Source: Gracilinanus agilis
Taxonomy: Eukaryota
Assembly (NCBI RefSeq): GCF_016433145.1
Contig: NC_058133.1
Location: forward strand, 111,000,969 to 111,064,968
DNA: 64,000 nucleotides
Direction of reading: 5' to 3'
Positions 1-691 of this stretch are shown here, piece by piece. Each line of letters begins with the position of its first letter. Positions within the stretch are counted from its first letter, which is position 1. The translations under genes and the position numbers were made by a program. The notes below the pieces were generated by a model. It was not told the origin of the DNA. It did no database searches and saw only the letters and a program-made list of their open reading frames with translations.

Positions 1-328
1 GGCCGCCGGGCCCCGGGGCTGGATACATTGTCGCGCCGAGCTTCCCCCGGGCCGGCCCCCAGCCGTCCCCGCGCGGCTTCCCGCAGCGCCAGGCCCCCCG
101 GGGGGCAGGCGCGAGCCAGCACGCCCAGACGGACTGACTGACCGATCGACCGAGGCAGCCTACGGGCCGAGGCTGGAGCCGGGGCTGAGCTGGGCTGGGG
201 AAGCCGGTTCTGCCGCCGCCGGGAAGCAAACTTCCCAGCCGGGCGCGGGGTGGCGGGGGCCCAGTCCAGGGCCGGAGGAGGAGACGGCCCGGAGTCCTCC
301 TCCTCCTGCTCCCCTGTCTCCCGGCACC

Positions 329-691
329 ATGCTGTCTAACTCACCCGGCCAGACCCCGCCCGTGCTGTTCCCCAACCCTCCACCGCCGCCCCCGCCCCAA
401 CAGCCCCAGCCCCCCTCCCAGTCCCAGCCCCAGCCCCAGCCCCAGCCTCCGGTGCTGCCTCTGCCGCCGCCACCGCCTCCGCCGCCGCCGCCGCAGCAGC
501 AGTCACAGCCGCCGCCGCCCCCCCAACCCCCTCAGCAGTTTCCCCAGTTCTATGTCAAGTCGAGCCTGCAAATAAAGAAGAATGCTATCACGGATGACTA
601 CAAGGTCACCAGCCAGGTCCTGGGGCTCGGCATCAACGGGAAAGTTTTGCAGATCTTTAACAAGAAGACTGGGGAGAAATTCGCCCTCAAA
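329..691 (+). CDS. MAPKAPK2: MAP kinase-activated protein kinase 2, coding exon 1 (121 codons)
   Basis: GGCACC-ATG start. Encodes [11 protein letters not shown], a Pro/Gln tract, then [52 protein letters not shown] (Gly-rich loop and catalytic Lys). Donor AAA|GTAAGT at 692, phase 0. Confidence 0.97.
401..520 (+). repeat. Coding imperfect (CAGCCC)n and (CCG)n/(CAG)n repeats encoding the Pro/Gln tract
   Basis: CAGCCC units at 401-448 and CCG/CAG triplets at about 464-520, read directly. Confidence 0.85.

Follow-up and report, generated by a model that had tools for sequence, protein, structure and literature searches.

The leader of a marsupial MAPKAPK2 gene carries a conserved in-frame CUG, probably the orthologue of the alternative start codon of long MK2 in mouse and human

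The window analysed here, a stretch of 64 kb (64,000 nucleotides) of opossum DNA, opens within the first exon of MAPKAPK2, the gene encoding the kinase MK2, and all of the features described below lie on its plus strand. The 5′ leader of exon 1 (positions 1–328) is 77% G+C, aligns with the leaders of the dasyurid Sminthopsis and of placental mammals, and is followed by the canonical MK2 start ATG at 329–331, in the context GGCACC-ATG-C, which is the same in 10 of 10 mammals. The coding part of the exon (329–691, 121 codons) comprises an N-terminus rich in Pro and Gln, followed by the beginning of the kinase, and a GT splice donor stands immediately after it at 692–693. When compared with the MK2 of Sminthopsis crassicaudata (P0038), the translation of exon 1 matches it, and an exact run of 47 residues is common to this translation and to a Monodelphis domestica model (P0063). 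A tblastn search with P0038 as the query and the 64-kb window, masked at 592–639, as the target recovered later MK2 coding exons (about exons 2–7) at 58655–63649, the ends given being the limits of the HSPs; intron 1 is, therefore, about 58 kb long, and the gene continues past the right end of the window. These matches identify the locus as the MAPKAPK2 orthologue.

The Monodelphis model P0063 (UniRef F6UZ64) opens with AAAGEQTSQPGA, which are residues of the leader frame (window 212–247), so that a database model already treats part of the leader as coding; it then skips into the interior of exon 1, at PVLPL... (window 449–589), a join that appears doubtful. The window has a lysine codon (AAG) where P0063 and Sminthopsis have glutamate. 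Furthermore, the Pro/Gln-rich N-terminus of canonical MK2 (window 329–540) is longer here than in placentals and in Sminthopsis, with an extra QPQPQPQP and poly-Pro runs, and the length changes keep the frame. Runs of N are found at 1266–1393 (128 nt), 55104–55435 (332 nt) and 61036–61168 (133 nt), the last of them inside MK2, between two coding exons.

A previous examination of the letters of the window, to which we refer as the sequence-only reading, had proposed that the leader encodes an N-terminal extension of MK2 started at a CTG in strong context. Its description of the leader was reproduced exactly on recomputation: the frame of the ATG at 329 is stop-free from base 2 to 328 (109 codons), the other two frames are shut by TGA at 135 and 139, no ATG occurs anywhere in 1–328, and in-frame CTGs lie at 134, 173, 185 and 314. 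A further TGA, at 186 and in the same frame as that at 135, had gone unmentioned. The candidate alternative start codon is the CTG at 173–175, which lies 156 nt 5′ of the AUG, is flanked by A at –3 and by G at +4, and corresponds in position, as an orthologue, to the CUG found at –141 (mouse) or –144 (human). The candidate extension that it opens (173–328, 52 codons) is Pro/Gly/Ala-rich, has blocks in common with placentals, and is identical in its 52 residues to the string given earlier, including three S-P sites, one of them in PLSP. Two of the other in-frame CTGs are possible minor starts, each with G at –3 and A at +4: that at 134–136, which is also found in Sminthopsis, may be one, and so may that at 185–187, which is present in both marsupials and is lost in placentals within a 6-nt indel.

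The sequence-only reading had itself cautioned that G+C-rich DNA is stop-poor, and rightly so. When bases 1–328 were shuffled with preservation of dinucleotides, at the same 77% G+C, the frame of the ATG at 329 was open in 31% of the shuffles (P 0.31), ATG was absent in 27%, and 25% held an in-frame CTG, open to the end, that combined a –3 purine with a +4 G, while the absence of ATG together with a good-context in-frame CTG occurred in 7% (P 0.07). In the window sequence by itself, each feature of the leader is within chance expectation.

The long isoform of MK2 was described by Trulley et al. in a preprint, and this work on the CUG isoform appeared subsequently in Cell Reports in 2019. The precedent that the sequence-only reading had named for human and mouse is real: translation of the long isoform begins at a CUG embedded in GCCGAGC-CUG-GAG, whose position is –141 for mouse and –144 for human (bioRxiv 10.1101/429696). 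The mouse long form is lost on mutation of either the CUG or the next GAG, is backed by ribosome footprints and by mass-spectrometry peptides, and needs eIF4A1 and G+C-rich clusters 5′ of the CUG, where the authors stress putative quadruplexes; peptides from 5′ of the CUG were also detected, indicating that more than one start is usable, and the annotated mouse 5′UTR is 318 nt long (bioRxiv 10.1101/429696). The authors describe the leader extension as conserved across species (bioRxiv 10.1101/429696, with the species list in its Supplementary File S1); the words marsupial and opossum are absent from the text of the preprint, that species list aside.

The window contains the same gene, with the same AUG-free, G+C-rich, in-frame leader. 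The context of its CTG, GCCGAGG-CTG-GAG, agrees with that of mouse at 12 of 13 bases, having G instead of C at –1, and the context in Sminthopsis, GCCGAGC-CTG-GAG, is identical to the mouse one. The extension would be of 52 residues in the window as compared with 47 and 48 in mouse and human, respectively, and the short blocks LEPG, GEAGS, QTS-PG, PEE and SPGT are shared with placentals. The differences include two 6-nt marsupial-specific insertions, which give the second CTG at 185, and an in-frame GUG at –309 in mouse, for which the window has no counterpart. Moreover, the long form has been demonstrated experimentally in mouse and human, whereas its marsupial version is predicted from sequence.

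Comparators were found by word searches with the window leader and exon 1 up to base 589, and these searches returned ORF-caller proteins that read in frame through the leader. The comparison comprised 10 mammals, namely two marsupials (the window and Sminthopsis, L001) and eight placentals: the rodents L002 and Peromyscus (L011), the white rhinoceros (L009), Myotis (L010) and four further species represented by Logan contigs only (the pangolin-like L004, L005, the bovid-like L006 and L007). Human sequence was kept outside of the comparison (the human-looking P0002 and P0003 and the human P0046 were excluded), and the human position of –144 is that of Trulley et al.

The block around the candidate start, CGAGGCTGGAGCCGGG (168–183), is invariant at 14 of its 16 columns in seven mammals and matches the alternative Kozak sequence of mouse; among the 16-mers of the leader in the 7-mammal alignment, only the AUG block, with 15 of 16 columns, is more conserved. 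The motif C[CG]GAG[CG]CTGGAGCC is present as a single copy in the leader of all 10 mammals, and the CTG forms a single aligned column in the 7-mammal as well as in the 10-mammal alignment. The choice of the CTG at 173 among the in-frame CTGs is thus supported at the level of sequence, since this CTG and the mouse-type CTG occupy the same alignment column throughout the 10 mammals. Furthermore, ATG is absent from the 330 nt 5′ of the start in 10 of 10 mammals, and in two placentals spliced transcript contigs (P0024 and P0058) span the complete leader, joined in frame to the kinase.

The alignment of marsupial and placental leaders, which had been suggested as a check on the position of the CUG and on frame-keeping indels, was run and gave a distance from CTG to ATG that is a multiple of three, and a frame that is stop-free, in every one of the 10 mammals. 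The lengths are 156, 162, 141, 141, 144, 144, 144, 144, 129 and 156 nt, and the CUG–AUG frame survives at least six indel events. Six of the eight gap blocks between the CTG and the ATG are multiples of three (3, 6, 6, 6, 12 and 33 nt, in nine species), and the sole exceptions, gaps of 8 and 2 nt, both occur in L007 and compensate each other. Between a TTCCCCC anchor farther 5′ and the CTG, only four of 18 gap blocks are multiples of three, and the net lengths fall into all three classes modulo 3. The bias toward multiples of three downstream as compared with upstream of the CTG has a Fisher P of 0.017 (0.0016 without L007), although triplet-like GCC/GGC repeats could inflate it.

The frame is not kept indefinitely in the upstream direction. 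The marsupial pair differs by 4 nt between the TTCCCCC anchor and the CTG, and because of this difference Sminthopsis has an in-frame TGA 14 codons 5′ of its CTG, directly after which comes its counterpart of the CTG at 134; the upstream frame is thereby closed in this species, in a further departure from mouse and human. Farther 5′, a conserved GGGCTGGrTAC anchor stands in differing frames between species. The open frame from base 2 onward, which the sequence-only reading had described, is therefore not a conserved feature upstream of about position 134, but it holds from CTG to ATG in 10 of 10 mammals, so that the conserved open frame starts near the CUG. By the same comparison, the CTG at 134 would be the farthest point 5′ that a marsupial extension could reach.

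Across therian mammals, then, the site is orthologous, its context is conserved and the CUG–AUG frame is preserved. On these grounds we consider it probable that the CTG at 173 is the orthologue of the CUG start that makes long MK2 in mouse and human, and its use as a start codon in marsupials appears likely. The marsupial transcript would then begin 5′ of position 173 and ribosomes would use the CUG there, both of which are inferred. In the mechanism that we propose, the 43S complex would scan the long, AUG-free, G+C-rich leader and a fraction of the complexes would initiate at CUG173, aided by the A at –3, the G at +4 and the next GAG, yielding an MK2 with 52 additional N-terminal residues (about 5 kDa) begun with Met-tRNAi, while the remaining ribosomes would leak on to the strong AUG329 and synthesize canonical MK2. 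This is the extension of a published mechanism to marsupials, and the mechanism itself is already known.

Opossums and dasyurids such as Sminthopsis stand on either side of the deepest division of the living marsupials, and the element would then be at least as old as the therian ancestor. That the arrangement predates the separation of marsupials and placentals, as had been surmised, is upheld at the level of sequence in the 10 mammals, and the retention in both groups of the CUG, of the context around it and of the frame would mean that the two isoforms were in place no later than in the therian ancestor. Word searches and cluster look-ups returned no monotreme, and the further marsupials that they gave were Sminthopsis, as DNA, and Monodelphis, as the protein P0063. 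Outside of mammals, the leaders of the lizards Anolis sagrei (L003) and Zootoca vivipara (L008) have neither the motif nor any homology to the mammalian leaders or to each other. Both lizard MK2 leaders are ATG-free, about 70% G+C and open in the frame of the AUG, for 127 codons in Anolis (L003:2620-3000) and for 110 in Zootoca (L008:1171-1500), which may be due to chance (roughly 0.1 each) or to an independent tendency of the MK2 gene.

A start at the CUG presupposes a transcript that contains it, and the core promoter offers an indication in this respect. A TATA-like box, CCCTCCCCTTTAAGG, lies 32 nt 5′ of GACGCGGCCGCC and is invariant in Sminthopsis and in four placentals (L002, L004, L005 and L006); it is preceded by a GC box of the Sp1 type (Sminthopsis coordinates L001:2560-2665). 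Base 1 of the window falls about 7 nt into GACGCGGCCGCC, and the promoter and the predicted start site are therefore off the left edge of the window. Applied to the rodent locus, the 318-nt mouse 5′UTR implies a start 26 nt downstream of the first T in TTTAAG, and the core promoter of Sminthopsis and the placentals is placed like that of mouse, so that this element, too, is conserved relative to the MK2 system of mouse and human. The marsupial transcription start is predicted at about 15 nt 5′ of window base 1; with such a start, the whole of 1–328 would be 5′UTR and the cap would be about 185 nt away from the CUG at 173.

The leader resembles that of mouse less closely in its quadruplex motifs. 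Two-tetrad (G2) motifs are present 5′ of or across the CTG at 1–22, 92–109 and 164–184, and the leader has no canonical G3 motif 5′ of the CTG at 173, which is a difference from mouse; one G3 motif with long loops lies downstream of it, at 241–271. The motifs 5′ of the CTG are, thus, weaker than those described for mouse.

The extension peptide itself was evaluated by Nei-Gojobori pN/pS and by the variability of each codon position. In-frame pN/pS ranges from 0.5 to 0.96, the highest value being that between the two marsupials, and the off-frame controls range from 0.44 to 2.2; over 38 aligned codon columns, changes at positions 1, 2 and 3 number 21, 18 and 27, and the excess at the third position is not significant. 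No Pfam family matches the 52 residues, and the blocks held in common with placentals in the protein alignment (those named above) are short. All three of the S-P sites that had been singled out as possible phosphorylation motifs are present in the window, but wide conservation is limited to the last of them, SPGT, which immediately precedes the Met. Human MAPKAPK2 is among the Ribo-seq-supported extensions of RiboSET, at rank 70 and with a PhyloCSF of –691 (Fedorova et al. 2022, PMC9789052), and this negative score in human fits the weak pN/pS contrast obtained here. By these codon measures, amino-acid constraint on the extension appears weak, and the extension looks like a disordered tail of which the existence, the frame and a few short blocks are kept while the sequence drifts almost neutrally. 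This places it with the RiboSET extensions that lack a codon signal (PMC9789052); the start codon, the context and the frame are nevertheless conserved across therians in this case, and therefore the extension is not simply unselected.

These values bear directly on the strongest alternative, namely that the leader is conserved as DNA or RNA only, as a CpG-island promoter, a 5′UTR structure or a factor site, and that little or no protein starts at the CTG in marsupials. We regard this as unlikely, even though several observations agree with it. In addition to the pN/pS near 1 between marsupials and to the negative PhyloCSF of the human extension (PMC9789052), the window and Sminthopsis are 90.4% identical over the extension and 88.5% identical at the start of intron 1, and the value is as high as 94.7% in the leader 5′ of the CTG, a region that does not maintain the frame. 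Furthermore, the CUG and the seven bases after it can pair with a downstream block, CCGGCUC, and could be kept as structure for this reason. Against such a purely non-coding conservation stand the CTG–ATG distance, a multiple of three in all 10 mammals next to an adjoining leader in which most gaps are not, a frame keeping that would be unexpected if the region were non-coding, and the fact that the same block is a proven, GAG-dependent start site in mouse (bioRxiv 10.1101/429696).

The hairpin, too, carries less weight than its conservation might imply. Window positions 174–182 can pair with 204–212, that is, the UG of the CUG and the following GAGCCGG with CCGG(U/C)UC(U/C)(G/A), and the downstream pairing block lies 21–30 nt 3′ of the CUG and encodes the GEAGS codons. 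Although 93% of the cells pair across the 10 mammals, with three one-sided, wobble-compatible changes, no compensatory change was found among these species, the local fold around the CUG is no better than that of shuffles (z = –0.62), and the helix is not formed in the minimum-energy fold of the window's own sequence. The hairpin is thus a lead rather than a finding. A more elaborate form of the preferred reading, in which selection over the whole of therian history has acted on the CUG, its context and the frame, with a nearly neutral peptide, and in which the conserved 9-bp hairpin perhaps gates the CUG, is speculative and, in our judgment, rather improbable. If it were true, the selected trait would be the act of upstream initiation, or a mere disordered tail that mutes some of the functions of MK2, and a hairpin gate would provide an eIF4A-dependent switch between two MK2 proteoforms.

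Less probable still is that the marsupial long isoform derives mainly from one of the neighboring codons, either the CTG at 134 (65 codons, –195) or that at 185 (48 codons, –144). The two marsupials share these in-frame CTGs, the first CTG being 39 nt from the main one in each, the Sminthopsis counterpart of the CTG at 134 stands right after the in-frame TGA, and the mouse peptides from 5′ of the CUG indicate that multiple starts are usable (bioRxiv 10.1101/429696). Nevertheless, both have A rather than G at +4, the Sminthopsis counterpart of the CTG at 134 has T at –3, neither is found in placentals, the CTG at 185 being located in a 6-nt segment exclusive to marsupials, and the proven context is that of the CTG at 173 alone. 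Pure chance, by which a stop-poor, G+C-rich leader merely happens to contain an in-frame CTG, would suffice for the window taken singly, as the shuffles and the two open, non-homologous lizard leaders illustrate, but it is hardly credible in the light of the comparative data, since it explains neither a site and context found in 10 mammals across the marsupial–placental split nor the frame-preserving indels.

The preferred reading, initiation at CUG173 next to AUG329, has its analogues in the classical non-AUG N-terminal extensions, which include those of MYC, FGF2 and PTEN-alpha and several of which carry functional sequence, for example localisation signals. As in these genes, leaky scanning past an in-frame CUG in good context would give two proteoforms from each mRNA; unlike several members of that class, the MK2 extension has no domain and no motif beyond its S-P sites. 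MK2 is a central p38-activated kinase of inflammation and stress signalling, and the long and short forms behave differently in mouse, where Hsp27 is phosphorylated by the short form only. The conservation described here argues against long MK2 being a rodent or primate oddity, despite the fact that codon-based screens score the extension as unselected, and it suggests that a proteoform may be missing from marsupial MAPKAPK2 gene models, which begin at the AUG. This is an incremental gain, because the mechanism has been published and the conservation of the leader extension among species has already been stated by its authors.

Two observations on the placental leaders complete the comparison. 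An in-frame ACG, in gacccACGgag, is located 24 nt 5′ of the CTG in all of the placentals examined (L005:1948 and L002:2148, for example), and the corresponding codon is ACC in both marsupials (window 155–157). Because mouse peptides have been reported from upstream of the CUG, this ACG could be an extra start used by placentals only. Finally, the partial Bos mutus protein P0041 (XP_014332450.2, 516 aa) extends 5′ of the AUG in a frame differing from that of the bovid-like L006 and regains the frame inside the Ala/Pro-rich N-terminus, a mismatch for which the probable cause is a frameshift introduced in a G+C-rich run by assembly or annotation.
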